64,000 bases of DNA from Klebsormidium nitens (GCA_000708835.1 DF237195.1:1-64000); one strand, 5' to 3'. Counted from the stretch's first letter, positions 1 through 20,809 are shown. Numbers and translations are program-made. The notes: a model not told the origin generated them from the sequence alone.

Positions 1-237
1 GCTTCGTCCTTGGCTACAATTTAATTGGACAAGTGACTGAGGTGCCGAACCTCTTGTAAACTCCGTTTGTCCGTGCGCCCATTCAGCCAGCTCACGTTCG
101 CATGTCGAGAGCTCTGGAGAGGTATTAGGGCAGACCCGAACGATCAACTTACAGCAGCGGCTTCCGTCTGTATGAGACTGGTAATCCGACTTGGGCGCAT
201 GTATCTGATTCTGCAAGAATTCAGAGGACGTAACGGG

Positions 238-305
238 CAGCTATGATGCCGACAATTTGGTCACTTGTGCCACTGGTGAGTTTGACTGCAGTAAGCTGAT
301 AATGT
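238..305 (+). ncRNA. Box C/D-like cassette, family A (3' stem decayed)
   Basis: CAGC-TATGATGCC...TGGTCACTTGTGCCA...CTGA(296-299); the downstream GCTG stem is lost. Confidence 0.55.
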
Positions 306-454
306 TCGACGGAGAGCTTGCAGGCCTAGGAAGGCCGCAACTTGCACTGTCTTTCTGATTTTCAGAACCGTACAAGCATAAAGAGCATTGTTGATTAGCG
401 GGCCTTTGAAGGGGTTGCTTCCGCAAAAGTTTGGCTACCCTTAATGAATCGTCG

Positions 455-510
455 GAGTTCTTGTCAACGGTTTGCTTCAGGGCCAAGAATTGTACCAGGT
501 ATGACGCTGT
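455..510 (+). pseudogene. Decayed family C cassette (5' half lost)
   Basis: CAGGGCCAAGAATTGTACCAGGTATGACGCTG aligns with the 3' half of the cassette at 10271 (GAGGGCCAATAGTTGTACCAAAAGTGACGCTG) and sits at the expected position after A; no box C seen. Confidence 0.4.
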
Positions 511-940
511 TCATGTGTTGAATTGCAGCTAGTTCGTGGGCGCCTCCCAATCTATCCTCTCATTTTTTTCGTAGCCGAATTTCGTAGATGTGGAGTTGCC
601 TTTTCAAAATGGCGTTCAGGCGCATCTTCGTTCTTTGACGAGCTACAAAACCACGAGTGTCCAAATTTTGGTAAAGTCAAGAGTCTATCCAGCATGTCGT
701 GCGCTTCGATTGCCACTGCTGCCGTCGCTCCTAACAAGAATCCGCAAAGGTCTCCTCGTTCCGTCTTTCATAAATTTCAAAATGTCTCTCGTGAGGCGCG
801 GCCCCTCTGAAAGTTCCCTACGCTCTGTGCGCCCACCGGGCTGATCAGGTCCCGACTTATGAGGATATTAGTTGGACGAATTGAGTTCGTTCTCCCTATC
901 ACTCGTTGAGCTTGGCTGGCTTGGCCTTGTTTTGAACCTG

Positions 941-1012
941 CAGCGATGAGGACCTTCTCGTACTCTAGACGCTGGCCATCGAAAAGGATGTTGGCTTCGA
1001 CTTCTGGTACTG
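941..1012 (+). ncRNA. Box C/D-like cassette, family D (box D mutated)
   Basis: CAGC-GATGAGGAC...CTCTAGACGCTGGCC...CTGG-T-ACTG. Confidence 0.5.
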
Positions 1013-1409
1013 TTGCTTTGTGCATCCTGGATCCACCAGTGGCACTCAGAAACAATGGTCTCAAAGCAGGGGCTGGTTTATGGTGTTTGCTTCTCAACCG
1101 GCAGAAACCGTCGGACACGTTCTTAAAAGCTAGCCTCAACCAGCGCCTTCCCGTTTGGTTCTTAAATCTTCTACTTAGACTCCATACAAGTCACATGATG
1201 CCAATCCTGATTCAAGAGAAGCCAACGTACCCAAGCTACGCGCACAATCCACCCAAGGCTTCACGACCCATAGCGTCAAATTTTTGAGATGTCGAACTGT
1301 GAATGCGCTTTGACCAATTTTCACTTTCGCTGGATTGCAGCTAGATTTTAGCCACTCCCTCTTTTTCGCGTTGTATGTCAGCAGTCCCGGGTCTATATTC
1401 TTGTCGTAG

Positions 1410-1480
1410 CAGCCGTGATGCCCCATTGAACGGCGAAATATGCCAGCGATCTGGGTGGACGTGATCTGGGGCTGACGCTG
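1410..1480 (+). ncRNA. Box C/D-like cassette, family B
   Basis: CAGC-CGTGATGCCC...CGGCGAAATATGCC...GGGGCTGA-C-GCTG; the CCC/GGG pairing extends the C/D stem. Confidence 0.7.
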
Positions 1481-1991
1481 TGAGTGTATAATGTGCCCAC
1501 TCCGATGGAAGGATAGAATAGCAGTAAGTGAAAGGCACGTGTCATGACTCCGGCCGGAGATCGAGCTTGGCTGTCCAACGGGACTCGAAGATAAAGAACT
1601 TTTTGTAAGCAGAGGTCAGATCGAGGGCCTGAAACGCCACTTCTGAAAGCGGGCTTCAATGGCTCTTTGCCCATGAGGCGTGCCCATCGCAAGTCTGTAG
1701 AAAAACAAACTTCTCATCTGACCACTCACGTCGAAGTCGTAAAAATTTCATTTTTCAGCCATTGGCCCGTCAGCCTATCTAGCCATGCTTTACTGTACAT
1801 GAGATAATGCCAATCTTTTCGTACCCCAGTTTGAGCGCTTGAGAGAATCCCTTCTTTTCTGCAATCCCCAACACAAGCAGAGCTCTCGGGAGGTAGGTCA
1901 GACTGAATTCAAGTGCAGAGCGTCTTCTTCTGACCGCATAAGAGTTCAAATCCCTTTGGCCTGTGTATCTTAATCTGCCAGACTCAACGGG

Positions 1992-2058
1992 CAGCTGTGA
2001 CGCCGAGCACTGGTCGCTTGTGCCACCGAAATACTTCTCTGCGAGCGAGCTGATGCTG
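1992..2058 (+). ncRNA. Box C/D-like cassette, family A
   Basis: CAGC-TGTGACGCC...TGGTCGCTTGTGCCA...CTGA-T-GCTG. Confidence 0.7.
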
Positions 2059-2219
2059 TTGGAGTGCTTGTAGAAGGCCTCAACTGAGATTTTGTGTCCT
2101 CGTTTTCAGTTCCACATAAGCACATGAAGGGGCCTGTCGTCTATAGGAGGTCCTTGAGAGTTGCTCAAGGACCCAAGTATCACAAACCTTGTCAGCAGGT
2201 CTTCATTTTCTCACAATGA

Positions 2220-2287
2220 CAGCGAGGATGACAGACTTTTGGCATCCCCAATGCAAAGGCCAAAAGCTGTTTCTCTCGATGATGCTG
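2220..2287 (+). ncRNA. Box C/D-like cassette, family C
   Basis: CAGC-GAGGATGA...TTTTGGCATCCCC...GCCAAAA (7-bp hairpin)...ATGA-T-GCTG. Confidence 0.65.
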
Positions 2288-2667
2288 CTCATCTGTTCAA
2301 ATGAACCCGGTGTGTGATTACTTCCCGCTGTACGCTCAGATCGCTACTTCCAGCCTTTTTCAGTTATGAAGAGTGCCTTTTACCATGAAGCGTTCAGTCG
2401 TAGCTTCTTCGACGGTTTGGAACCACGAGCTCCTATGCTTCAATAGGTCAGTAATATGATTAATCATGCCGTCTAGAATTAGCCAGTGGTACCAGGATCC
2501 TCTTAAATTTCGCGGAGACTCTGGTCATGCTGACTGTCAATCGGTCCCTAAGGCGCGGGCCCCTCTACCAGGTCCTTTGCTTATCATTTTACGGGTCCGT
2601 ATCGGGTCTAAGAAAATTGTGGAGTCCGATTGTATCACGGATGAAGTTGGCCTTCCTCCGACATCTG

Positions 2668-2735
2668 TGGCTATGAGGACCCGCTGTAGATCTAGACGTT
2701 GGCCACTCTAGAGCGGTAATGCTGGTCTGATGCTG
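2668..2735 (+). ncRNA. Box C/D-like cassette, family D
   Basis: TGGC-TATGAGGACC...TCTAGACGTTGGCCACTCTAGA...GGTCTGA-T-GCTG; GACC/GGTC pairing. Confidence 0.7.
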
Positions 2736-3226
2736 TCGAATGCTGTTGCTTTAAGTATCCTGGATCAAATGTGCGATCGTAATCAAGTTTAAATGCGTCT
2801 CACGAGAATATCAAACACGTTCTCAGACCTTATTCTTGGTCTTCGATCAGTGTTGAGAAACCTACCCTTGGAAGAATCTCCTCAGACTCACATCGATCGA
2901 GATAGTCCCAGATTGCCACTCCTGAAAGAGAAAGCCGACAGTACGTGGGCGGGCAGAGTAAATTCTCAGCACAGATGTGAGGACCACTACGGATTGGGAA
3001 TCCTGAGGGGGTCCAGAGTGGCACCTTGAACCTGCGATGATTATAGACGGTAGCTTTAAATCTCCAAGCTTATGCGCACACGTCCTCGCATAGCTCCATA
3101 CTTCTTGACGTGTCAACAATCGGACAAACTGACATGAAGCAATAGGTCCGGACTCACCCAGCCTTACCTCTGCAAAACACCGCGCTTGTAGTCTTCCCCC
3201 TTCTGCATTCTCTGTCTTCGTCACAG

Positions 3227-3298
3227 CAGCCGTGATGCCCAATAAACCGGCAACCTGTGCAGCCAGCTCTCTGTCCACTTTGTTTGGGGCTGACGCTA
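3227..3298 (+). ncRNA. Box C/D-like cassette, family B
   Basis: CAGC-CGTGATGCCC...CCGGCAACCTGTGC...GGGGCTGA-C-GCTA. Confidence 0.7.
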
Positions 3299-3942
3299 TT
3301 TACGTGTCCGCTCGGATGGAATTGTTTTTGGACAGCTCAAAATATGGCTTCTACGCAACGTCATCACCCGGCTACTTTTAGCAGAGCCCGGTGCTCGAGG
3401 CATGAACTCTGATACCAAGTTTTTGGCGACAGAGTACCGGCAATCTACCCTTCGATGTCGCTCGGTGACGTCAGGCGTTCCGGGTCCCAGGACGCTCACT
3501 TGTAACGAGCGAAGGCTTATACGTACTGGTATGAAAATAGCCAGCTCTAATTATGCTTGTGCCAACCGGATAGATTGCTGACAGCCGTTGGTAACTAGAG
3601 GGAGATCAGAGGGCCCCGTTCTTGAAAGCGGGCTCTAAAACTTTCTTGCCCCATGAGAGCGCTATTGATTGCAGGTATTTATAGAGACAAAATTTTCAAC
3701 TGCCCACTAACGTCAAAATCGTATATACTTTCAAGCCCTTCGCCCACCAGCGTCAATTACTCCCCAACAGTTAATGATGCTCTTTCAGCGTACCTCTTCC
3801 GAGGGCTCTGCAAAAATCTCTCGTTTGCAATTCCCGACACGACGGAAGAGCTCCAGACTTGAAGGATTGATAGAGTCTCTGACTGTGTACGAATGTAGTC
3901 CTTGAGCCCGTCTTTGTGTGGTTGCTGGACTTGATTCGCGTT

Positions 3943-4003
3943 CAGCTGTGATGCCAATCTTCTGGTCGCTTGTGCCAGAAGAACTTCTTCAGATCTGATG
4001 CTG
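3943..4003 (+). ncRNA. Box C/D-like cassette, family A
   Basis: CAGC-TGTGATGCC...TGGTCGCTTGTGCCA...TCTGA-T-GCTG. Confidence 0.7.
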
Positions 4004-4193
4004 TTTGAGTGCTTGCATCAGAGGGCCGCCTAAAATTGGGGAGACCATAATCATAACCATATTATAACCATATCATTACCATAGGGAGACAGCCTGTCGG
4101 CTAGCCGACCTCTTGAGAGTAGCTTTCGCATCACGTTGGCAAGTTCAAAAGCAGCGGCGGCAGCCTTTGTCAACGGGTCGCCTTTTGTCACAA

Positions 4194-4270
4194 CAGCGAG
4201 GATGAGTTACGTGTTGCCTCCTTAGAAGGCATGAGCCACTCGTCAACCAGAAATATCAACAATGACGCTG
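4194..4270 (+). ncRNA. Box C/D-like cassette, family C
   Basis: CAGC-GAGGATGA...TTGCCTCCTTAGAAGGCA hairpin...ATGA-C-GCTG. Confidence 0.6.
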
Positions 4271-4788
4271 TTTCTTCAATCTATCTGCACGGGCACCTGG
4301 TTCGGAGGTAACTCCCCTTCTCCGCTCTGAAGTTTTGCTGTCACAAGCCCGTGCCTATCAAACGCGTGGCGTTAACTCAGATTGCTGCTGACACAACCAG
4401 CTACGGCTAAGAGCGGTTTGCCGGATGATATTTTCTCATCTGCAGCGTATCAAACGTGGGACGGGTACGATCATGCTGCTGAGCCGTAATGGTACACTTT
4501 TGCGCCGAGGTTGCAGATTGTGCCTGCCGTTTCCAAACCGGGGTTCAAACGTAATTCGAGGCCCATGAGGGCACTAATTGCAGTTCGCGACTTTGTAGGA
4601 ATGCACTTCGCCTCAGATTGTTTCTTGAACAGTTGTGCTAGTGGACCTCTTCAACACAAGTGCAGCTTTCGAGAGGTGGCCAAACCCAAACCACTTATTA
4701 ATTGACGGCTTTTGGCTGCATATGCGTAGAACGACTGTTATCTTACCTTGGGAAGCCTCTTCCAAAATTTGGATGAGGGACTAACGGG

Positions 4789-4856
4789 CAGCTGTGATGT
4801 CAAGCACTGGTCGCTTGTGCCAAGCAAGGTCGTGTTAGCGAGAAACGCTGATGCTG
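4789..4856 (+). ncRNA. Box C/D-like cassette, family A
   Basis: CAGC-TGTGATGTC...TGGTCGCTTGTGCCA...GCTGA-T-GCTG. Confidence 0.7.
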
Positions 4857-5026
4857 TTTCAGTAGTCTTAAAAGGCCGCAACTGAAAAGTATGTGTTCCT
4901 TGAGATTCTCGACTCATCATAAGCACAGAGAGGCATGTCGTCTATCAGGCCCCTGAGAGTAGCTTTCGCATCACCTCTGGATCTTTGAGAGGGACCGTCG
5001 TTGGGTCAGCAGTTCTTCTCTTCAAA

Positions 5027-5091
5027 CAGCAAGGATGAATCAACGTATGGCATCCCCAAAGTGCCAGCAAGTGTTCCCAACACTGACGCTG
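5027..5091 (+). ncRNA. Box C/D-like cassette, family C
   Basis: CAGC-AAGGATGA...TGGCATCCCCAAAGTGCCA hairpin...CTGA-C-GCTG. Confidence 0.72.
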
Positions 5092-5533
5092 CTCGTCCAA
5101 TCGATTGCAACCGGTTCTTGCGCACCGCTTCCTCGACAACGATCTCAACACGCAATCCGCTTACCTCGTTATATATGAGAGTCTTTTAACGATTGGGGCG
5201 TTCAGACGTTATTAGCTCTTCTACGTTATTGCGCTCCGGAACCACGAGCATCCAAGTTTGATAGGTTCTGGATCGTCTTGCGACAACTCATGCCGTTGAA
5301 AGCCACCGCTAACGTTGCTCCTTCGGTCGTCGGAGTCTGCGAAAGTCTAGTCATATCAGCTCCGTTAAAACTTTCAACGGTTTCTGAGGATTGAATCCTC
5401 TAGAGGATTCCTTAAAAACAACCTCGTTGACTTCCATAAGTCCATTTTGCTTCGAAAGGACAATCGCCAATTAAATGAGTTCCGTTTGTCTACTCACGTA
5501 CTACTCATGAGCCAGGCACGCATCTCATTCCTG

Positions 5534-5605
5534 AAGCTATGAAGACTCGTTGTGACTCTAGTTGTTGGCCAATCTAGAGGGGTATGAGAGCGAGATCTGA
5601 TGCTG
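5534..5605 (+). ncRNA. Box C/D-like cassette, family D
   Basis: AAGC-TATGAAGAC...CTCTAGTTGTTGGCCAATCTAGAG hairpin...TCTGA-T-GCTG. Confidence 0.7.
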
Positions 5606-5953
5606 CTGCTTTGTGGATTCCGCATCGCCACTGTTATTCCACGAAGTTGCTTCGTCATCGCCACGAAGAATCAAACAAGGTTGAAAAACCTAGCCTTGAT
5701 CTTCGCGGTTTGTTTCGAAATTCCTTTCCATCGACAAGTCTACGAAGACGATGTGGAAATTGCCAGTCCTCAAAGAGAGGCCAACGAAAGATTTCTTTGC
5801 GCAGATTCTTGACGCAAAAGCTCACGCAGAGCTTCAGCCTTTTTAGTTCCTTGACAGTTCTGCGAATTACAATGCCACAGACCCGTACTAAATAACTTTC
5901 ACCAGATGTTTTTGATGTTATAGATCCGCATTCGCCCTCGTTTCTCGTGGCAA

Positions 5954-6020
5954 CAGCAATGATGCCCGGAGAACGGCAACTTGTGCCACTTCCTCTGTCT
6001 CTTCTCTGGGGCTGACGCTG
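5954..6020 (+). ncRNA. Box C/D-like cassette, family B
   Basis: CAGC-AATGATGCCC...CGGCAACTTGTGCCA...GGGGCTGA-C-GCTG. Confidence 0.72.
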
Positions 6021-6556
6021 CGAATATGCCCGCTTGGATGGAAGATGATCACAGGGAGTGAGCAAGGAGCACGTGCCACTGATTTACTTGGCGCTCTTGC
6101 TTGGGCTTGCCAACCTGAATCGGACCACAAAGAACTTTTTCTACGAAGAGCCTTTTCTTTATTAGAGTCAAAGATCAGAGTGCCCGGCCCCCGCTAGTAA
6201 AAGCAGGCTTTGAAATATGTTTTTGGCCCACGAGGGCACTCCGTTTGCAAGACTTTAGAAAGGAAAAGGGTTGTACGGTCGTCGATCACTCACGTCCAAA
6301 GTCAACTTTGGTAATCTTTTGATTCTTCGCCTGCCAGAATATGTAGTGACACATGGTGTCTTGATTAAATTGAAAATTTTGACGCTCTTTCCGCGTACCT
6401 CAAGCTCTGGTAAAAGCTCTCGTCTGCACAGTTCGAGACAATAAAAGCCTTCAGGTACGTCGGCAGCCCCGGATCGTCAGCAGCAGCTTTTGTTTGTAAG
6501 CTACTACGTATACGTCCCTTGGGCCTCTGCCGAACCTAGAGAATCTAGTAATCCGG

Positions 6557-6610
6557 CAGCTATGATGCTGAGCCTCTGGCCATTTGTACCTCCGCGATGA
6601 GGCTGATGCT
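6557..6610 (+). ncRNA. Box C/D-like cassette, family A (short)
   Basis: CAGC-TATGATGC...TGGCCATTTGTACC...GCTGA-T-GCT. Confidence 0.6.
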
Positions 6611-6767
6611 CTTCGAGTGCTGCAGAAGCCGCGAACCGAAAAGGTTTTCGACTTTGCAGATCAGCAAGGCTGTAAGAGGAGCTAGGGCTGATGACTAGTG
6701 GTGCTCAAAAACGAGCTTCTGCATCGGCCACTTTTTTAGCAGCCGTTTCTATCGACGCTCGTTACAA

Positions 6768-6840
6768 CAGCCAGCAAAAATATCGGTGTCTTCCAGGGCC
6801 AAAGCATACATTAAGCCCGATCTTTCCAGGATAACTCTGT
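6768..6840 (+). pseudogene. Decayed family C cassette
   Basis: Expected position (A+211); residual ACAACAGC and CAGGGCCAA motifs; boxes not intact. Confidence 0.3.
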
Positions 6841-7252
6841 CTGTCCGTTTATGAATCATCGAACCGTTTGGCAGCAACTACGTCCAAGTTCGTCAAAGGT
6901 GACAGGGCTTTCCCACAGGGAGTCAGATCTAGCGGCTTCGCTGTTCGGCTTCGAACTACGATTATTTGCGTTTTCGTCCGAGTCACAGGCCGTCTTGCGT
7001 CAACTCACGCCGGCCGAAGCCATATTGCTGACGTGGCACTTCCAGCTTCAATTGGATTCAGCTTGGAAGGCCCTGTCTTTTGGGAAGGGTCTTCGAAACG
7101 CGGCCCCTAAGAAAGATCCTGGTAGTCTGAGCACACTGCACACACGGGCGAAGCAACTTCCTTCATCCCATGTTAGATTCGAAGAGACAGAGTTGGGCGA
7201 TCCGGATTCCTTCTGTATTGGTTGCTGAGCTTGGCTCTTGCTCGTTTTTCTG

Positions 7253-7323
7253 GAGCTATGAAGAACGCCTCGGGCTCTAGACGTTGGCTACTCTAGAACT
7301 GTAGATCGAGCCGTCCGATGCTA
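7253..7323 (+). ncRNA. Box C/D-like cassette, family D
   Basis: GAGC-TATGAAGA...TCTAGACGTTGGCTACTCTAGA hairpin...CCGA-T-GCTA. Confidence 0.6.
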
Positions 7324-7675
7324 CTCCTTTGTGCATCCTTCGATCACCACTGGCATTTGTTCACGGTGCCTCTTGTCCGCCACAATATTTTAGAAACGTT
7401 CCAAAATCCGTTTTCGTCATTCTTACACGGCTGAAATTGGAAAGATCCTCAACGGAGACACCTCAACGAAAAGAAACAAAGAGTTCGCCGCTCCTGAAAG
7501 AAACGCCAAAGGTATCAATATTATGCGACTGAATCCAGTCGTAGCCTCACGCGTCGCTTCAACCCGTCAACAATCTTTATTTTGCGTGCGATAGAATCAG
7601 GTTCAACCTCTTGACTCTGCAAATCTATAGTTGTTTATCTCGTTTATCTCATCATTCTCTATGTCTTCGTCACGC

Positions 7676-7743
7676 CAGCCGTAATGCCCAGTGGACCGGT
7701 AACATGTGCCAGGCCTGCCATAACGCTTTTAAGGCTGACGCTG
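7676..7743 (+). ncRNA. Box C/D-like cassette, family B
   Basis: CAGC-CGTAATGCCC...CCGGTAACATGTGCCA...GGCTGA-C-GCTG (box C G>A). Confidence 0.6.
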
Positions 7744-7953
7744 TGTGGGCGCCACTCGGATGGAAAAGGGAGATAGGAAGCGAGCGAGAGGCACGTGTCC
7801 TTACTTCGGCTCGCGCTCGTGCTTGTGCTTGCAAAACAAATCTCCGGAGTCTCAAACGGCACGGAGAGCTCTTGAGGAAGTAGTGGCGGCAATAGACAGT
7901 CGAGGCCGGCGCTCGCGACAGCAAGGATTGATATGCTTCTGTATACAACAGCG

Positions 7954-8031
7954 CAGCAAGGATGACCATCAGAGTTTGGCATTTGGGAACATTTGCCGCA
8001 CCTGCCTGCACGTCTACACGACCGGATGCTG
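7954..8031 (+). ncRNA. Box C/D-like cassette, family C (box D mutated)
   Basis: CAGC-AAGGATGA...TTGGCATTTGGGAACATTTGCC...CGGA-T-GCTG; a duplicated start ACAGCAAGGATTGA lies ~35 nt upstream. Confidence 0.55.
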
Positions 8032-8280
8032 CCTAGTAGATGCACCTTGGAGTTCAGTATCTCTCTGCGCTTTGGTTTAATTTGATTCTGAAAACCCTAC
8101 TTTGAGTCATCAGGGCTAAGGAGAAGTGGAATGTGAAAAACTTTAAGCGCATGATTCCACCCGGAGTCTCACGCATGGCTTCCGTTCCGCTGTTAGAAGT
8201 AGGCGTTGGAACCATCCTCACCGATCTGCGGAAGTTACCAATTGTTTCTATTCTGCGTTCCCCCTAGTTTTTCGTTACAG

Positions 8281-8348
8281 CAGCCGTGATGCCCAGTGAC
8301 CGGCGCAGCTGTGCTAATTCTGGTTTCTAATGGATTGGGCTGACGCTG
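8281..8348 (+). ncRNA. Box C/D-like cassette, family B
   Basis: CAGC-CGTGATGCCC...CCGGCGCAGCTGTGC...GGGCTGA-C-GCTG. Confidence 0.7.
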
Positions 8349-8472
8349 TGTATGTGCACTTTTAATTATGTGGTTCAAGACAGAATCGACAAAAGGGACC
8401 TGTCGGCACCGCGCGTAGTGCTTCTTTACATGTTGGTACACCTCATTCAATAGAAGGATCACTTCGTCCCGA

Positions 8473-8547
8473 CAGCGAGGATGAGGAAACTTTGCATTGG
8501 TATCCCCTACGAAAGGGCGGAGCCACACAACACCATCAACGACGCTG
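8473..8547 (+). ncRNA. Box C/D-like cassette, family C
   Basis: CAGC-GAGGATGA...TTGGTATCCCC...ACGA-C-GCTG. Confidence 0.6.
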
Positions 8548-8969
8548 TGCATCGGTTTCATCTGCACCCATCTTGAAAGTTCACCTTCCGGTTCCCGACT
8601 CCTTTGCTCATCTCAACCGCGTCGCATATCTGAGTGCCTTGTCAGTGCGGTCATTCGTGGCTTCTTCGTTACTAGGTTCCAATCACCTTCATGATTGCCC
8701 ACATTTTAATCAAGGGAGAAACCTTCAGAAGAGAAGTCAATTGATGTGCTCATCAAAGCCAGTGCTACCGGAGACCCTTCACAAAACCCTCGAAGGCCTT
8801 GCCATTTCCTCTCTCTGGTTCCACTGGCGCGGCCGCTCAGTAGACTTTGTTACTTTGTTACTTTGCTCGGTCTCCCTAATCAACCTCTACAACTTGTTTG
8901 TGTCCGGTCCTAGCTTGAGAATGAGCAATCTACGATTTCGTGTGTGTCCTGGGCCTCGCCCCGAAAATG

Positions 8970-9044
8970 TAGCTTTGAGGACCCAATGTGAATCTAGTCG
9001 ACGTTGGCTAGAGTGCACGTGGGATTGGAGAAGGTCTGATGCTG
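8970..9044 (+). ncRNA. Box C/D-like cassette, family D
   Basis: TAGC-TTTGAGGACC...TCTAGTCGACGTTGGCTAGA hairpin...GGTCTGA-T-GCTG. Confidence 0.65.
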
Positions 9045-9344
9045 CTGTTTGTGCAATAATGGATCATTACTGGCACTTGAAGAAGTTGCTTCTCGACTGC
9101 GGAGATGTTTAGAAAGGGTCTCAACAGCTTGCATTCATCTTCCTGACTGGTCTTGGAGGTCTTTCGCGGACAACAGATTCGCCACGGAGATTGCACCTCT
9201 TGAAAAGAAGCCAAAAGCATCAATCTTACGCGCACGAGCGCACCTAAAGCATCGTTCAATCCTGTTTCGTGATGTCAGCAGGATTCGGAACCGGGATTTT
9301 TCTGGTATTCACCACCGGGAGCCCCTTTGTCTTCGTCGTAGCTA

Positions 9345-9408
9345 CAGCCGCGAGTCCCATGAAAATGGCAGCCTGTGCCACGTGTTCCACTTCTTCGGGG
9401 CTGACGCT
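9345..9408 (+). ncRNA. Box C/D-like cassette, family B (box C decayed)
   Basis: CAGC-CGCGAGTCCC...TGGCAGCCTGTGCCA...GGGGCTGA-C-GCT. Confidence 0.5.
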
Positions 9409-10046
9409 TCAACGTACCCGTGTTCGCTCGAAACCAATCATAGGGCAGCAAGTAGGCCGAAACCAAGTGTCATCATCTTATCCGACTCTCGTGCTTGTGC
9501 TTGCCGACCCGAGCGGAACGAGAAATGACTGTGTGTAGTCCGGTCCGGTGACGCGAACGGTCCCGCCAGAAAGTTTGAAGTCAGCTGGGCACTTACCATT
9601 CGCATGAGTGTAGAAAGAGAGATTTCTCCTCACAATCAATTAAGATTACATCACATTCGCTTCTTCTCCGACCTCACAAGTTTGCATGCCAGTAACTGGA
9701 CAAGGTCTCAAGAAGCTCTACCAATATCTCGTGGAAATCCTGACGTTCCGTCTCGAGCTTGGAACCAGCCCCGCGAGCTAGGCAGGAAAATTTCATGTGT
9801 CGCTGCTATTATCTTTTTTCGGTCCGTCAAGTAATGCACTTTTGACTTGTCCATCTTTCAAGGCAAACCGCCTGCAGTGGCTTCTGCTAACTTCGGCTGC
9901 GAAATCGGATCCGATTGCAATTCCCAACGCAATAGGAGCTCTTGAAATAAAGGCCAGGCCAGCTTCAGCCGCGGATTTGTTTAGTCCGCGACTGAATTGC
10001 TTGGCCCATATATCTTTTTCTTCCAATATTTGAGAGAGCACACGGG

Positions 10047-10110
10047 CAGCTTTGATGCCAAGCAATGGTCACATGCGCCACTGGTATGCATACTTGACGA
10101 GCTGATGCTG
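10047..10110 (+). ncRNA. Box C/D-like cassette, family A
   Basis: CAGC-TTTGATGCC...TGGTCACATGCGCCA...GCTGA-T-GCTG. Confidence 0.68.
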
Positions 10111-10270
10111 TTCGAGGTGCTTGGAGACGGGCCCAATTGGAAACGCATTTTTGCTTCCTACCTCCGCGCATTGAGAGGCTTGTTGCAGGCGGGCCTCCGA
10201 AAGTAGATTCGCCACCACGTCGCCTTGATCGAGTGGCACCCGGATCTTTGTGCAGATTATCCTTCCGTAA

Positions 10271-10333
10271 CAGCAAGGATGATTAACACTTGGTATCCTC
10301 AGAGGGCCAATAGTTGTACCAAAAGTGACGCTG
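10271..10333 (+). ncRNA. Box C/D-like cassette, family C
   Basis: CAGC-AAGGATGA...TTGGTATCCTCAGAGGGCCAA hairpin...GTGA-C-GCTG. Confidence 0.65.
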
Positions 10334-10756
10334 TTGATCTGTTCAACTGGAGCCGGCTCGTGGGCGCAGCTGCCCGTGTCATGCTTGCTAGCTCATTCCA
10401 GTCCAGCATTTTTGAAAGCGGATTCTTCGTTCAAGGGGCGTTCAGTCGTCGCGCGCTTTGTCGTTTCCATGCTTCGTATCAACGAGTATCCACGTTTGGG
10501 TCAGTACTAAATGTTATCCAGGCAATCACGCGGGTCGGAAAGCGGTGCTACCATAGCTCCTTTGAGGGATGCTCGGAGGCCCTGTCGAATCTCCCTTCAG
10601 AAGGTCTTTGAGGCGTAGCACCAATATATATTTGGGTCCACTTGTTCGTGCGCATGCGGCGACCAAATTCCATTACTTCGTACCACCTCTGAAGAATACT
10701 GGGCGATTCAGATTTCGTTTGTATACTTGTGAACATTAGCCCTGCTCAGAGCTCTG

Positions 10757-10830
10757 CAGCTATGTATGACGACTCCCCGTGATCCCAGACGTTGGAAGCT
10801 CTAGAACGAGTCCTTGGTCAGGGTATGCTG
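10757..10830 (+). ncRNA. Box C/D-like cassette, family D (decayed)
   Basis: CAGC-TATGTATGACGAC...CCAGACGTTGG...CTCTAGA...GTA-T-GCTG. Confidence 0.45.
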
Positions 10831-11091
10831 CTACAGCTGCTTTGCATCACTGATCATCTCTGGCGTTCAACGGTCGAAACAGTGCTTCTCGAGTGCGGGC
10901 TACTAGTAGAAAAACGTACTCGGACGAAGCGTACTCTGGTCATTCTAATGCTGCTGTATCAAAATGAATCACCGAACAACCTGCAATAATTGACCTGGCT
11001 ACACGGATGGGCAGATATTTTGCTTGTCAAGGGACGTGATCTATGCATGTATCGGAGTCGAGTGCTTGAAGCAGTACCGTTTTCAGAAGAG

Positions 11092-11148
11092 TAGCAATGA
11101 TGAATCAGGAAGCCCGGCACTCTCCGAAGTTCCATCAGCCTGAGTGTT
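11092..11148 (+). ncRNA. Box C/D-like cassette with canonical box C
   Basis: TAGC-AATGATGA (canonical box C at 11097-11103)...CCGGCACTC...CTGA (11140-11143); terminal stem weak. Confidence 0.5.
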
Positions 11149-11828
11149 CAAAAATTATTGAAGCTGCCCAGCAATCAGATTTAAACCCGCCACCTTTTTA
11201 GCTGGTTAGAGCGGTGTTAATGGCCCGCATCACCGCTTCCTCAGATTGGCGGGTCTTATTGCTCGATCGAAAAGACTCATGGTTTGTGCTCGTCAGTTCT
11301 TGCCTCGGGCAGGCCCATTCTTTTAGAAAACTAGCTGCCCAGCAGCGTCTCTTGAATCTTTGTTCCACTCGAAACACCATCCGCACCATTGCTTCAACGC
11401 CTTTCGGGTCCCAAAAGGTGCGACTGATCTCGTTACGTGACGGCAAAAATGTATGATTTGAGTAGAGGCCGTTTGAAGCCTCTGACCACCTGTTGTGCTA
11501 AGACGTGCAAACCCCTCAAAGCGATCACAACAGGAAAAAAAGGAGTACGGAGTCGCCTTCTGGTCGCCCTTCTGGCCATAGGTTTCCAGAGCTTTTTGAA
11601 AGCTCACATTTGGTAAAATCATAACACACCGACACTTCGAATCATCCATTCCCTATGCCTGTCTCGGTGACCAACGTTCCTAGGTCACTTTCTTTGCCTG
11701 TCTTGATGAATGACGTGCCTAGATCTTATACGACGTGAGGGTTTCAAAAGTCTTCGTGGGCGGCAGGCGCGCAGGTAGTGGCGGCTGTTCCGACTGCTGA
11801 CGTTTCGTCGGTACCTCCTCACTTGGAG

Positions 11829-12078
11829 CAGCAAGGATCAGCAAGCTTACTTGGCACTGGCTCAAAATTCACTATAAATCAATACCCGGTTTAAGATCGT
11901 GTGCTGAGGCCGTTTTGATCTCAGAAACTCAGCTTTTAAGATCAAAGTGGTCTGACACAACGTTTAAGACCAAATTAGCCTGAAAACCTGAATAGGTTCA
12001 AGATCGAAGTGGCCTCACAACGATCTTAAACCGGGCTATCATTTATAGTGAAAGAGGAGATCAATGGGTCTGAAGCTG
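11829..12078 (+). pseudogene. Family C-like cassette interrupted by a MITE
   Basis: CAGC-AAGGATCA...TTGGCACT before the MITE and TCTGA-A-GCTG after it; removing 11870-12050 restores a 69-nt cassette. Confidence 0.6.
11870..12050. mobile_element. 181-bp CACTA-like miniature inverted-repeat element
   Basis: Ends CACTATAAATCAATACCCGGTTTAAGATCGT... and ...ACGATCTTAAACCGGGCTATCATTTATAGTG (~31-bp imperfect TIR starting CACTA); internal TT(A/C)AGA(T/C)C-type subterminal repeats; no perfect 3-bp TSD. Confidence 0.7.
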
Positions 12079-12682
12079 TGCGCCTGGAAACCCGCAGCCG
12101 CCGGGCTCTCCACGAAATTCACACCGATGTCAAGAGAAGCGCGTATAGAACTAACTGGGTGCGCAAAACTCTGTGCGCGCACCGGCCGTTACGGATCTAA
12201 TCATCTCAGATCCTTCTTTTTGCCTCGTGTTTTTCGCTTGCTACAGGCTCTTACTCTTCCGGGAAGATCCAGACCATTAAGCAAAGGGCAAAGCTACCAA
12301 ACCTGTGCATTTTCACGAGCGGCCAGGATGCTAGGTGTCTGGCCCTGCGCCAGTAATAGGGCCGAATCCACGTGCTGACGCTCTTCAGTCTCCTTCCCGC
12401 CATAGGACGACGGATCCCTGCGTAGCCTTGCAAGTTTCGAAGGATTTCTTCAGCGCCCGCGCCCTTCCCAAATAAGCAGCACGATGAAGCTTCTGATAGT
12501 AAAACCGTTGGATAACCTTAAGCAATGAGCAGCTTCGTTCCCAAATGAGAGGCTCTGCGAAAATTCTCAATGTCCGCTAGCGTATCTTCTCCGTTTCTCG
12601 CCGTCGCGTCCGTTATCCTCTCTAACACCAACCTGACAGAAAGTGAAGTCCGTGAGAGCGTCGGTCTGCCTGAGTCTGCAGA

Positions 12683-12758
12683 CAGCAACGATGCAACTCG
12701 AAGTGGCACACGCAGAAGGAACGCCAAACGTGCTCATCGCCCCTATGCACTGATGCTG
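12683..12758 (+). ncRNA. Box C/D-like cassette, family E
   Basis: CAGC-AACGATGCA...AAGTGGCACACGCAGAAG...CTGA-T-GCTGTTTGCGAAG; paralog at 14766. Confidence 0.65.
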
Positions 12759-12904
12759 TTTGCGAAGTCCTGGAGAGCGGGTCGGCGCCTTGAATTCTCA
12801 TTCGTTTCGTGTGGCCATCCATTCCTTTCTGCATAATTGACAATTTGATCCTTCTGTCCTTCATGATTATTTTGAGTGCCTATGATTTCCTGTTCGTCTT
12901 ACAG

Positions 12905-12975
12905 CAGCAAGGATACTAATCTTCTTCGGCACTTCTGCCGGAGTGACAAACTCCAAGTGCTTAAGTCTGACGCTG
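12905..12975 (+). ncRNA. Box C/D-like cassette, family C'
   Basis: CAGC-AAGGATAC...CGGCACTTCTGCCG hairpin...TCTGA-C-GCTG; paralog at 14973. Confidence 0.65.
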
Positions 12976-13432
12976 CGCATCATGAGTCGAAGCGTTACAA
13001 TCCCGCATGTTAAAGCATTATTTGGTGCCATTCTCTTGCCTGTTTTACCATCTTACCGGTGTTCCTTGAGGCTTCACTTGTGGCTGTATTCGGGCTCTTC
13101 TGGCTTCGACTATTTTCGGCGCAGGTTCCAAGATTCCCTTTGGGAAGATTCTGATGAGTCTCATCTTGGTTCGCAAATCTCGATCCGCAGTGGGCTAGAT
13201 TCCGCTCGCACTGCCGCAGAGGATTTGCAACCGGCAGTCCCTAGCTGCCTTTTGATTCGTCTCTCAAAGCGCTGCTTGCGTTCCGGATTCGTGCACATAG
13301 AAAGATGTGGGCACACCTGTAAAATGGATTCCGTACACGTCCTGACCCCTGGCGAATTTTTTGGAATTGAGTATCTTGGCTGACGTCACCATCGCAACTA
13401 GGCAGTGATCAACCCACAGTCGCCAGGACTAA

Positions 13433-13489
13433 ACGAAGGGATGGCTCTGGTCTGGGGACTGAGGAACTCGTGGTGGACCCTGATGCCGT
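13433..13489 (+). ncRNA. Box C/D-like cassette, family F
   Basis: ACGAAGGGATGGCTCTGGTCTGG...CCTGA-T-GCCGT; paralog at 15449. Confidence 0.45.
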
Positions 13490-13772
13490 ATTATAGGTGC
13501 AATATTCATGTACACAAGGTTAAACGAGGCGAAAAATGTCTGCTTCTCGGTCGAAGATCGGCCGTATGAACGATCAAGAAGGTCCTTCAAACGAGGCGAA
13601 TCAATCGCTCAAACCACGAGGACGTAAATGAGGGCCAATGACCCGTTGGATGGTCGAAACATCTGCGCAACCTAATCAACTCTCGCAACCTGAATGCCGC
13701 GTGGACCGCCCATGTCGATTTTGGAACGTGTTGAATTACGAAGAAAAAGAAAGAAGAGGGCTTTCTTTAGAG

Positions 13773-13843
13773 CAGCAATGATGCCAAGCCTGTTGCCCGC
13801 GCCCAGTGGCGTCGCGAGTTTTCTCGGAAGGTTTCTGATGCTG
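13773..13843 (+). ncRNA. Box C/D-like cassette, family A'
   Basis: CAGC-AATGATGCCAA...TGCCCGCGCCC...TCTGA-T-GCTGCGC; paralog at 15807. Confidence 0.68.
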
Positions 13844-13900
13844 CGCGTTCCCTGTACAAACGTCACAATCATATTGATGTCGACTTTTAGCACTTTCGAG

Positions 13901-13967
13901 CAGCAAGGATGGATTTGGACCTGGCGCTCTCTTCAGAGCGGCACGTCTAGTACGCTGACCTGAGCTG
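13901..13967 (+). ncRNA. Box C/D-like cassette, family C-like
   Basis: CAGC-AAGGATGG...TGGCGCTCT...CTGA-GCTG. Confidence 0.55.
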
Positions 13968-14765
13968 GCTCTGATTTTACATTTCCTTTGTTTTAGGCAA
14001 TGCTTTCAATCAGTTTAGAGTCTTTACCCGTTCAAATGGAGTACGTACAGAAAAATTTTGCTGCAACGCAGAACTTTATTCGGAGGGCACACAAGGCAGG
14101 AAGTTTGCGCGACCTCTTTTTTGTTTTCTTCAAAAGTGTCGATCTTTTCAGGTCGTGATTGCGACCTTCGCATAAGAAACGGCGATGATGAGCCCATTCG
14201 ACAACGTCGGGATTGACAGTACCGACTGGTCTTGGAGGTGATATGACGCCACGGGTGCGGTCCGTTTTGATTTTTTCCATTGTGCCGGGGTGCTCCGCGC
14301 CTCGTCTTCTTCTGGAAAAACAATTACGTCCAGCAAACGCTCACTTTATCTAGATTAGCACACCGTAATTCTGGCGAAGTCTTTCAACCTGATCTAACGT
14401 ACGGCCATTCGCTTATGCACCTGTCCGTAACACTGTCATGACCACGAGCCACAGTCTACAGTCTTCTTAGCGTAAACTCGTCATCTGAGAGCTGCCATCT
14501 GTTTCAAACGGGATGCATCGGCGTTCAAGACTTCGATCTTCTCCTGAAACGGGTAGTGTGACTTGACGAAGTCAGCGCTGACACTCGTGCCGGCCGCATA
14601 AGGCTTTTTCCCATTCCCTTGGTTCCTCGCCCTTGTGCTCAAAACGGTCTCGGCTCCGTGGTGGTCCAGAGGATCGTCAACCACCTCCACAACCCTCCTT
14701 CCAAGCTGGTAAGCCCGGAAGAAACCGAAATCCCTGACAAGGGTTGTTTCTCTTTAAACTGCGGA

Positions 14766-14845
14766 CAGCAAGGATGCAACAGGAAGTGGCGCGCGCAGAA
14801 GCAAGCCACAAACCTCTCTTCCGTAATCTCATCGGACTGATGCTG
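14766..14845 (+). ncRNA. Box C/D-like cassette, family E
   Basis: CAGC-AAGGATGCA...AAGTGGCGCGCGCAGAAG...CTGA-T-GCTGTTTGCGAAG. Confidence 0.68.
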
Positions 14846-14972
14846 TTTGCGAAGTTGCGAAGTGTGGGAGCACGGCGCCCACTTAAAGAACCAACGTCTT
14901 GCTTGCGTATTAACTCGCTGCAGCTTTGAACCTCGGTTGCTTCCTTCTGATGTCCTTGATTGATCCAAAGAG

Positions 14973-15042
14973 CAGCAAGGATTACCAATCAGCTGGCCCG
15001 GCACTCCCGCCAAATGCGCTGTTGTTGCTTGATCTGACGCCG
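14973..15042 (+). ncRNA. Box C/D-like cassette, family C'
   Basis: CAGC-AAGGATTAC...CCGGCACTCCCGCC...TCTGA-C-GCCG. Confidence 0.6.
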
Positions 15043-15448
15043 TTCACTAGAATTTAGTGACTTCACTGGGGCCAAAACTGAGGGACAGCGAAAAGCACGG
15101 GCTGTCGCCTTTGCTCGCCCGGTGTTCCTAGAAACTTAGCAGCTGGTGGTCGCTCTGAGTACGAAACTCTTCGCAACCCACCTTCCTGTCTGAAAAAGGG
15201 TCTGATGACTCCCTTGTTCCGCAAAGCCCATCTTCGACGCGCTGGCGGAAGGATTTGCGACCGGCCAATACTTATAGCGCCTGCGCCTTTCTGATTCCTC
15301 ACATCTGAATCCCCGCTGCTTGCGTCAGCAGAATCAGAGCCCGGAAGACGGCGTGGGAATAAGCTGCCAACTTGATACCTCCCCTGTGATATGGCGATCA
15401 GCTAAGCTGACGTCATCGTCCTAAAGCAGGAATGATCTGCCACTTCTA

Positions 15449-15514
15449 CACGAAGGAATGGCTCTGGCCTGGAGGACCATGAATGCGAGGGGAATATGAC
15501 GTGGGCTGACGCTG
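15449..15514 (+). ncRNA. Box C/D-like cassette, family F
   Basis: ACGAAGGAATGGCTCTGGCCTGG...GGGCTGA-C-GCTG. Confidence 0.45.
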
Positions 15515-15806
15515 CATTACTGGCGTGTTTGTCTTCCCGTGACGATCAGATGAACAAACGAACACATCCTCGTGCTTCCTCGGAAGGTTTGGCCGTACAA
15601 ACGTATAAAGAGGGTCCTCTAAACCGAGGCAAATTGACTGCGTCAACCTGAGGGACATGGTCCAATCCTAACCCCTCGTCGATGTCAAACCGGCTGTGCA
15701 ACCTGGTGCAACCATCACCACTCAGGATCAGCTGTGTGGATAGACATGTTGGCTTGGCAACGTTGACGAATTACGCGGGAGTTTCAGACGGGACTTTTCT
15801 TTGAAG

Positions 15807-15868
15807 CAGCCATGATGCCAATCATAGTGCCCCGCACCCGCCGCAACCAAAGACTTTGACTGATGCTG
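15807..15868 (+). ncRNA. Box C/D-like cassette, family A' (last recognisable unit)
   Basis: CAGC-CATGATGCCAA...TGCCCCGCACCC...CTGA-T-GCTGCGC. Confidence 0.68.
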
Positions 15869-17575
15869 CGCATGCGCCGTACATCCGGGTGAACTGACTG
15901 CTAGGGTTGATGGACGCAACAAATACTTCGTTCAAACCGTGTTTTGGCTTCTCTGCATTGCTCAAAAACGACAGACTTTGCAATCCATTCATGAATAGCG
16001 GGGCGCAATCTGGCGCCTGTCGGCTGGTCAGGTCGTCTGAACAGCGAGCTTCCGTGGAGCATTGCAGGTCAGCTAACGCCACTGCTTTAAACCACCCCTT
16101 ATGATAGCAGGGGCTAGAGCGATCTGCTCGATTTCAGCATTCCAGTTGGTGATCATGGAGGATTTTCAGATCGAAGATGCAAGAAAATGTTTGGTCGGAT
16201 GTGATGATCCGGGGGCCTCGCAGAAGGCACCGATTGGCCCTGATTCGTAGATTGGCTTGCGTTCAAAGACGCGTGGTCCCGCTAAAGTTATACGACATGG
16301 AGACTTGCGACTTTGCCGGTAAACTGAACCCACACGCGGCTTGCTTGATACGAGCGAGGGACCCCAGTCAACCAACCTTTGCGAGGTGGTGTTTGCACGT
16401 GCTACTTCATAACGCAAAAGATTCAAATCTTCTAAGTGGGATATTCTCATCGGAACCCATATGCATATCGGATGACAGCATGAGCAACACACATTTGGCA
16501 GCACACGCATGCATGAACCCCGCCGGACTTTTCAACTTAGATGAATGATTCAAGGGCCGCATGCCGATATGCTTCGTCGCCCTGGCAACCTTCTTTGCAT
16601 GCTTCAATGACATGTAAACGGAGCAGCGCGGCCTGTAGAAGTCATGCACATGATGATGCACTTGGCACGTACATACATGGCAAGCTGCATGCGAGATTTC
16701 ATGAGACGAATCGTGCTTGGAACAGAAAGTGGTTACTAAATCACAACGTTATCTAGCTCACTAGCCGCGTGTAGATCGACCGTCTGCAGCCCGCGCACAG
16801 CCACCTAGGCTAATAAATCCACATTGACTGGGCATGAGTCCATGTACTTTCACACATGACCTACAGGCGACATCATACGCGCACAGGGCACGGACGTAGG
16901 CAAACGCTTTTCGGCCTATATGTAAAAGATCAACAATTAACGTGACTGTCAATTGTGATCATAACCATGCATGTAGAACGCGGCCGGGCGCAGCCGTCCA
17001 CAATGCTCACCCAGCATGTTACCTAAACGTCCTATCATGCATGCAGTTCTGGCCCGGTCTCGGACTTGGAACAGACCGAATTCTCTGTTTAGTAGGATTC
17101 TGCAACATATGTTGTCCATTGCCCAACCAGATATGCGTTCGGTTCCCTTGCATGCAAGCTCATTCCGAAATATGAGAAAGCAAATGCAGCTCGGCTCCAG
17201 AACCACCGAGCTAAGGCAGTGGAGCTAAGCGGCACTATTTAAAGAAGTTTCGTAGGTCCAACCATACCAGTTTTAAAAACTGATTTTCAGCTGGAGGAAC
17301 AAGCTTGCAAAACAATTCTGCAGCTCTGTCTCTTAAAACAACGGAACCAACTGAAAACCGCATTTGCCGAAGGCAGCCTGAATCGACTAAGCGCAGAAAG
17401 GAAGGAGCCGGGAACATATACATACAAGGCATTATTATCTGGCATTCGACTAGCTACAAAGCTGGTTTGTTCGCTCAGAAGACATTAACCACCCACAGCG
17501 AGGGCATATCCAACACAGCAACTATAACTACCGCGCTCTTTGCAGCTGGACCTATCCAGCTTTGTTACCTCTCGC

Positions 17576-20209: not shown

Positions 20210-20809
20210 TGCCCTCTCCTACTGGACTGTCAAAGGGCAGCAGATCCGAGTGTCTTTAAATGGACCGCCTACTTCAAGGTGGCCCTTCACCAACCCCTAT
20301 TCTTGTGGGGTGCTTATGATTGGCATTCGTCTCGATCTGGTCTCATTCGCACCAAAGCAAATAGCTCTCAGGCTTTCACTCTTGCCTACTCCCCTCTTCC
20401 TCCTTCACAAAGAAGGTCGTGAAGCAACACGAATGAGACTTCCTGCAAGCCTGGAAGCAATGGCTAGGGTACACAAGCGCTCTCAGAGCACACCCCTAAA
20501 TTCTGCTCCCAAGCTTGATCGCCCTGAACAGGGTGGCTCAACTTCAACTGCAGACTCCAGATGTCAGCATCCACACAGCCAGGCTACATATTCCGTCGCT
20601 AGTGAGGTACATAAGGGCTGGGATTTTGCCAGGCTGGTGCCAGGATGTACAACAGGCTGTAGGTACGTTTCCGTTGGATTGGCCGATCAGCCGCGTCAAC
20701 AGTGGTCAAATGTGCGCGACCAGTACTTTGATACGCGTCGCGTATCCCAGTTGACTTTTTGTGGAACTCGGCCCCCGAGCCCAGCTGACGAGTAGGTACG
20801 ACAGTCAGT

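Follow-up and report, generated by a model that had tools for sequence, protein, structure and literature searches.

A tandem array of box C/D snoRNA-like units with a conserved frame and a variable segment before box D in the streptophyte alga Klebsormidium nitens

Results

We analysed a stretch of 64 000 nucleotides (nt) from Klebsormidium nitens (GCA_000708835.1, DF237195.1:1-64000; hereafter the window), in which a long array of units resembling genes for small nucleolar RNAs (snoRNAs) of the box C/D type lies near a Rab GTPase gene. By motif scans and reading of the sequence, about 36 such units were found on the + strand between 238 and 15870, and on the other strand and in the rest of the window the motif scans returned scattered chance matches only. 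Up to about 10.8 kb, four families of units recur in the fixed order A-C-D-B with a period of about 1.8 kb. This part is followed by a second sub-array from 11828 to 15870 with units E to L, in which a G-H-...-I block is present twice (12638-13858 and 14720-15883). The units are spaced at 0.2-0.7 kb, with spacers of 150-700 nt between them, and one of them, unit E, is split between its hairpin region and box D by an insertion resembling a miniature inverted-repeat transposable element (MITE). In self-BLAST comparisons the unit bodies were 68-72% identical to one another and the whole repeat units only 58-64%, so the duplications are old. The intron-bearing Rab gene at 17.4-20.8 kb places the array in a clearly eukaryotic context.

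The general plan of a unit is a 5' CAGC, a variant of box C, an interior of 40-70 nt, CTGA as box D, one base and GCTG, with a total length of 56-90 nt, the size of box C/D snoRNAs being 60-100 nt. Relative to the box C consensus RUGAUGA, the variants GUGAUGC, AGGAUGA and AUGAGGA all retain G3, A4 and G6. Box D is CUGA in most units and NUGA in some copies of family C, and the terminal stem, for which 4-7 bp is the usual size, is formed by CAGC/GCUG in K. nitens and by GAGCAGC/GCUGCUC in the two related arrays described below. Families A and B are sister families that share the series TGATGCC, linker, GGY-loop-TGTGCCA, slot and CTGA, where we call slot the segment between the hairpin and box D (11-27 nt in K. 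nitens) and frame the conserved parts around it. No conserved UGAUGA or CUGA that could serve as internal C' or D' box was found inside families A and B, which have a GGC/GCC hairpin instead. Family C units open with CAGCRAGGATGA and close with NTGAYGCTG, and the GGC/GCC hairpin inside them has up to 8 bp; those of family D combine an ATGAGGA-type C box with a long internal hairpin around TCTAGA...TCTAGA and with CTGATGCTG. The linker from box C to the conserved interior element measures only 4-10 nt and is therefore too short for a D' guide.

A GGC...GCC hairpin core was present in 34 of the 61 units from the three genomes, against 10.0 ± 2.8 in shuffled interiors, and the extensions of its arms covary (GGCA/TGCC, GGCT/AGCC, GGCG/TGCC, TGGCTT/AAGCCA, CTGGC/GCCAG and CTTTTGGC/GCCAAAAG); the longer hairpin of family D likewise has compensatory arms. 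Judged by these covarying arms, the conserved element appears to be a small hairpin. Folding of single units gave z-scores of -0.9 to +1.5; single-sequence folding energies are usually undistinctive for C/D RNAs. The slots of family B end, directly before box D, in 3-4 conserved nt, GGG(G), which are complementary to a CCC after box C, a pairing in cis that would not fit canonical D-guide geometry, and in family A a G stands directly before box D in five of the six copies. Rfam gave no match at the gathering score in the window and no relevant match at E ≤ 10 in 1-16500. A pyrimidine tract plus AG before the units was also considered as a possible 3' splice site and rejected: the upstream pyrimidine fraction was 0.56 compared with 0.52 array-wide, the AG belongs to the extended GAGCAGC stem, and no 5' splice consensus was found downstream.

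The conservation of frame and slot was compared among the K. nitens paralogues by mean pairwise global alignments between the copies of families A and B. Identity was 0.80 (family A) and 0.71 (family B) for the 5' frame and 0.91 and 0.93 for box D with the 3' stem, but 0.52 and 0.54 for the slot. The 40-nt flanks gave 0.48-0.56 and 0.53-0.57, and shuffled sequences 0.45-0.47 and 0.46-0.51. The difference between frame and slot far exceeds what chance would give. It had been described in a first-pass annotation for positions 238-10830, and all nine of the variable segments quoted there lie directly 5' of a CTGA box D; the pattern is thus present in that range, but the array extends to 15870. 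The slots of the paralogues are as diverged as the flanking spacer and not more, because the repeat units of about 1.8 kb are of great age and saturated. The freedom of the slot has limits, as the GGG(G) of family B and the G of family A are kept before box D; in its base composition no special bias or compositional constraint was detected.

Homologues of the low-complexity open reading frame (ORF) at 26053-28134 were found in one Logan assembly, with 81% identity, and, with 46-47% identity, in two contigs from JGI sample 3300060284. These two related algal contigs, which we followed along via called ORFs and denote X and Y, carry a low-complexity gene, a Rab GTPase gene and a same-strand array of about 16 C/D-like units, so that their arrays adjoin the same two genes in the same order as in the K. 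nitens window. Their units follow the K. nitens plan: after the C box come a hairpin that ends in GCCA, a slot (11-25 nt) and CTGA. In X and Y, a gene for a Mur ligase of the MurE type (Pfam Mur_ligase_C) separates Rab from the array, on whose strand it lies. This gene lies at L084 14353-18700 (- strand) and is also present in L085 and L086; none stands at that place in the K. nitens window. The X and Y ORFs upstream of the array had no Pfam match and gave no support to a location of the array inside a MurE intron. The non-coding DNA of X and Y is 79-86% identical, and the two contigs differ in copy number through local unit duplications. X has a tandem duplication of about 1 kb that adds units (L087 ~6840-8850), and Y has about 1.6 kb of extra sequence (L088 8628-10261) with C/D-like units at ~9075 and 9982. 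In comparisons of K. nitens with X, the best frame matches had an identity of 0.56-0.72 (shuffled 0.46-0.50), and the slots averaged 0.45 (shuffled 0.44). A closer relative, the Logan assembly SRR23617307 (L082, L089), is 74-85% identical to the window around the Rab gene and has a protein-coding gene beside Rab and no array there, and the ENA contig L090 aligns almost only in Rab exons.

Substitutions and indels were then counted over 13 orthologous unit pairs of X and Y, whose degree of divergence suits a comparison of rates. The frame had 7.6% substitutions (54/710) and 0.56 indel events per 100 nt, against 13.4% (1188/8872) and 1.4 for the spacer; it changes at 57% of the spacer rate (P = 3e-6) with 2.5-fold fewer indels, and is under purifying selection in these related algae. 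The corresponding values were 16.8% and about 4 for the whole slot, 11.2% and 3.4 for the 9 nt of the slot adjoining box D, and 22.7% (25/110) and 4.5 for its hairpin-side part. When the slots were tested against 2000 draws of random spacer segments with matching lengths, the substitution rate of the whole slot was not significantly above that of the spacer (permutation P = 0.125). Five of the 13 orthologous slots differed by at least 30%, compared with 14% of spacer windows of the same size, and units f, h, l and p have several slots that hardly differ between the two contigs; well-conserved slots were not present in a higher proportion than well-conserved spacer windows. By reading of the alignments, a box or stem has been lost in one of the two contigs in 4-5 of 15 orthologous pairs, and individual units are therefore expendable.

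Guide targets were sought in ribosomal RNA (rRNA) and in the window itself, which contains no rRNA. The rRNA reference was L037 (Ga0194130_10006354), a chlorophyte ribosomal DNA (rDNA) from a metagenome scan with a green-lineage 5.8S pattern and the only scanned locus with a full large subunit (LSU), most other long loci being unusable as rDNA. Exact complements to its small subunit (SSU), 5.8S and LSU did not exceed chance in any unit. With a local score that tolerates G:U pairs, none of 32 K. nitens slots and none of 30 X and Y slots scored above mononucleotide shuffles (p < 0.05), and a 9-nt Watson-Crick core at -3 to -11 was found in 0 of 61 units where about one was expected by chance. 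Methylation guides have a conserved antisense element of 10-21 nt that ends beside box D or D' and is complementary to rRNA or snRNA; no such element was found against the L037 SSU, 5.8S and LSU. Within the 64-kb window, complementary 12-mers of the slots numbered 4, against 2.2 ± 1.3 in shuffles, and two of the four reflect same-sense paralogy. Of the seven group I introns in the L037 rDNA itself, one is placed at the SSU 3' end and the other six interrupt the LSU; a 5S rRNA gene with the same orientation follows the LSU at a distance of about 1 kb.

The coordinates of the units and of other features of the window are listed in Table 1. The spacers hold conserved blocks of their own in each repeat unit: GTGCCCGCTCGGATGGAA, AGGCACGTGTCA and CTCGTGCTTGTGCTTGCC after B units, where a GGATGGA motif and GTGCC/GGCAC complementarity are present, GCGTTCAG...AACCACGAG after C units, and elsewhere GCGGCCCCTCTGAAAG, TTGCCAnTCCTGAAAGAGAA and GAAAGCGGGCTT...CCCATGAG. 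These blocks might represent additional small RNA genes, or else signals for processing. Several of the low-complexity ORFs on the + strand share a C-terminal motif (VCALANA..EKAEALRRM, LEAVERA.LP, RNAATGRFE), and a related ORF takes the array's place beside Rab in the Logan relative (L089 ~5500-6300, - strand).

Table 1. Array units and other features of the K. nitens window
Feature	Position	Strand	Remarks
A1	238..304	+	slot 273-295; 3' stem degenerate
A2	1992..2058	+	slot 2026-2049
A3	3943..4003	+	slot 3978-3994
A4	4789..4856	+	slot 4823-4847
A5	6556..6611	+	short, degenerate; slot mostly deleted, hairpin weakened; overlooked in the first-pass annotation
A6	10047..10110	+	slot 10081-10101
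B1	1410..1480	+	slot 1446-1471; GGGG at slot end
B2	3227..3298	+	slot 3266-3289
B3	5954..6020	+	slot 5989-6011; overlooked in the first-pass annotation
B4	7677..7743	+	slot 7712-7734
B5	8281..8348	+	slot 8317-8339
B6	9346..9409	+	slot 9381-9400; C box degenerate; overlooked in the first-pass annotation
Family C	2220..10333	+	unit starts ~440 (degenerate), 2220, 4194, 5027, 7954, 8473, 10271
Family D	941..10835	+	unit starts 941, 2669, 5535, 7254, 8970, 10758 (10758 degenerate)
Unit E	11828-12078	+	interrupted
MITE-like insertion	11868..12052		185 bp; 33-nt terminal inverted repeats, 88% complementary
Unit F	12320	+	
Unit G1	12682	+	
Unit H1	12905	+	
Unit I1	13773	+	
Unit J	13901	+	
Unit K	14180	+	
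Unit G2	14766	+	
Unit H2	14975	+	
Unit L	~15420	+	
Unit I2	15807	+	
Conserved spacer blocks (examples)	1493-1575, 6030-6115, 7752-7835		
Further spacer blocks	605-655, 790-815, 1199-1232, 1640-1680		
RabE/Rab8-type GTPase gene	17390-20760	-	several introns
Rab exon	18855-19034		encoded peptide identical to contig X over 55 residues
Run of long low-complexity ORFs	36044-47391 and 52871-57900	+	no Pfam matches
Tandem repeat	37301-37463		84-nt unit x1.9
Tandem repeat	60958-61090		57/30-nt G+C-rich array
Tandem repeat	61922-62002		(GGTTTA)n x13.7

Discussion

In our reading, the region 238-15870 holds a single-strand array of orphan, lineage-specific genes of the box C/D snoRNA type that evolves by birth and death, with selection on the frame but not on the sequence of the slot, and we put the probability of this reading at about 60%. 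It builds on what was observed of the architecture, the contrast in conservation, the purifying selection on the frame and the lack of complementarity to the L037 rRNA, and the box and stem damage in 4-5 of 15 pairs fits evolution by birth and death. The array would go back to a four-gene unit (A-C-D-B, about 1.8 kb) that was duplicated in tandem long ago, together with the second sub-array. Each unit of 60-90 nt is predicted to form a C/D kink-turn from an xGAUGx C box and a CUGA box D, closed by the CAGC/GCUG terminal stem, with the short GGC/GCC hairpin following after the 4-10-nt linker. The slot, from the hairpin to box D, sits at the position of a D guide and would drift at approximately the neutral rate while being prone to indels. 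Box C/D snoRNAs proper are stable small RNAs to which Snu13, Nop56, Nop58 and fibrillarin bind. The units are presumably transcribed on a long precursor and trimmed to RNAs protected by the small nucleolar ribonucleoprotein (snoRNP), and selection would act on snoRNP assembly and the dosage of the whole array, not on single copies or on guiding.

Several points weigh against this reading. The indel excess of the slots, about three times the spacer rate, is significant (P = 0.0035), and the hairpin-side part of the slot changes faster than the spacer (22.7% versus 13.4%, P = 0.0045), the latter by a post hoc partition that was picked after viewing the alignments and is based on 25 changes. Neither the excess of indels nor the fast hairpin-side half is predicted by pure neutrality. 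They could represent alignment noise at indels, short conversion tracts between paralogues with alike frames, a neutral rate underestimated from spacers that have conserved blocks, or real diversification. Families A and B are without identified orthologues in X or Y, so that the rate test concerns sister families. C4 and C7 of family C and unit p of X have a weak common slot core, and some units may therefore carry a real antisense element. The rRNA compared is foreign, being that of the metagenomic chlorophyte L037, and the negative result holds only for conserved rRNA cores. Finally, the stretch is present in four DNA runs and almost absent from the RNA contig sets, of poly(A) type, that bear the same species label; the sole RNA contig, of 262 nt and depth 2, covers unit D2 at 2631-2892, which neither proves nor excludes small RNAs.

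The first-pass annotation had called the segment before box D hypervariable, and in the sense of faster than neutral this is weakly indicated by the indels and the hairpin-side half, but not by the whole-slot substitution rate, which lacks significance. It had also offered two explanations of the pattern. A diversified guide repertoire does not agree with slots that diverge as spacers do, with the non-significant whole-slot rate, or with slot complementarity to rRNA (L037 SSU, 5.8S and LSU) and to the 64-kb window at the level of shuffled controls, the very combination that the annotation itself had associated with neutral decay. The proposed likeness to TIGR guide arrays is limited to an abstract layout, as the variable segments bear no sign of selection or acquisition. 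Its other explanation, that function resides in the frame and hairpin, is better supported: between X and Y the frame changes roughly half as fast as neutral sequence (P = 3e-6), the hairpin arms covary, and between K. nitens and X the frame is recognisable with slots at the random level.

Guiding could nevertheless take another form, in which the slots are fast-turnover antisense guides for non-ribosomal targets (messenger RNAs, transposons, small nuclear RNAs (snRNAs) or transfer RNAs) and diversity itself is favoured. The slot does occupy the canonical D-guide position, and the speed of its hairpin-side half, its excess of indels, the 5 of 13 orthologous slots with differences of at least 30% against 14% of spacer windows, and the nearly unchanged slots of f, h, l and p are all in line with such guides. 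We nevertheless regard them as unlikely, since complementarity to the 64-kb window did not rise above shuffles, the 9 nt adjoining box D, the most important ones for guiding, change at a neutral rate, and conserved slots are no more frequent than conserved spacer windows; moreover, the D-proximal bases of family B would be sequestered in the cis helix, and C' and D' boxes are lacking. A version in which the alga maintains hundreds of C/D snoRNP frames and the slots are guides under diversifying turnover, their hairpin-side halves being replaced faster than neutral DNA by substitution, indels or short conversion tracts, seems to us distinctly improbable. If it were true, the guides could be retargeted to non-ribosomal RNAs, for example transposon or viral transcripts, and a eukaryote would possess, on the basis of snoRNPs, a counterpart to an adaptive guide library; should the excess change of the slots hold, a quick turnover of guides becomes a testable idea.

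A decaying, functionless array of snoRNA pseudogenes would account for the degenerate copies A5, B6, C1 and D6, for unit E split by the MITE, for the box damage confined to one species in 4-5 of 15 X/Y pairs and for RNA support limited to one contig of depth 2. It would not account for a frame that changes at 57% of the rate of the spacer and has 2.5-fold fewer indels, for boxes and stems that persist in paralogues with saturated spacers, or for the retention of architecture and locus in two lineages, and we hold it to be very improbable. Smaller still, in our estimate, is the chance that the units are ordinary rRNA or snRNA methylation guides whose targets were missed in a foreign rRNA. Their C/D anatomy and the typical clustering of plant snoRNA genes (PMC5122169) agree with this, as does the comparison with only one complete, foreign rRNA set (L037), but not one of the 61 units has even a 9-nt core match, the slots are unconserved between paralogues, between X and Y and between lineages, and no Rfam family appeared even at E ≤ 10. 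Methylation sites lie mostly in conserved rRNA cores, and a real guide is the best-conserved part of a snoRNA. A last reading would see the true antisense element in the conserved 5' half, working with a D' box that has degenerated, and only filler in the slot before box D. It can be almost dismissed: 11 nt complementary to the A1 element TCACTTGTGCC do occur in the LSU of L037 (GGCACAAGUGAAAUACCACUAC region), but this is at chance level, with about six such 11-mers expected over all units by an estimate from sequence lengths, the 4 nt after the element are unconserved, so that there is no D' box, the linker has only 4-10 nt, and when families and genomes are compared, the pairing within the element is retained but its sequence is not, as in a hairpin.

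The preferred reading, an orphan C/D array selected for its frame, can be set beside three known systems. We found no paper on such arrays in Klebsormidium, other algae or plants. TIGR-Tas systems (PMC12045711) have in common with it only the abstract idea of tandem units with conserved ends and variable inner segments to which a Nop-domain protein binds. TIGR arrays are of short period, belong to bacteria and phages, lie beside a Tas gene and have dual DNA-targeting spacers, whereas the K. nitens units are eukaryotic and 0.2-0.7 kb apart, and no Nop-domain gene was present among the large ORFs of the window, which are without Pfam domains; the array is thus not a TIGR-Tas system. The polycistronic or intronic snoRNA gene clusters of plants and green algae are the closest in lineage and consist likewise of clustered, same-strand C/D genes with local tandem duplication, few land-plant families being detectable in algae (PMC5122169). 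The known clusters have a compact layout, and their rRNA targets are in most cases identifiable and conserved, with orphans a small minority, whereas the K. nitens spacers of 150-700 nt hold conserved blocks of their own and no unit has a detectable target in the L037 rRNA.

Arrays of orphan C/D snoRNA genes have been known chiefly from imprinted loci of mammals, and their function has long been a puzzle. The mammalian SNORD115/SNORD116 (Prader-Willi locus) and SNORD113/114 are tandem orphan C/D arrays whose function is thought to lie outside classical rRNA guiding. They are not homologous to the K. nitens array but are its closest analogues in function: both have dozens of same-strand C/D units every 1-2 kb, lack an rRNA target and turn over by birth and death in a lineage-specific manner (PMC12429941, PMC4063771). 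Gene conversion homogenises the mammalian copies, whose antisense elements are retained (SNORD115), whereas the K. nitens copies are 58-64% identical and their slots random. Each K. nitens repeat unit also holds four different families, its units have an internal GGC/GCC hairpin and lack C' and D' boxes, and the array is without known host-gene exons or imprinting. K. nitens seems to have evolved a large array of the same logic independently and in a cleaner form, with copies diverged enough for selection to be read directly: the snoRNP-forming frame and the small hairpin are kept, and the 'guide' is not. This leads to the idea, testable in a tractable alga, that such RNAs act via snoRNP assembly, dosage or RNA-end protection and not by base-pairing.

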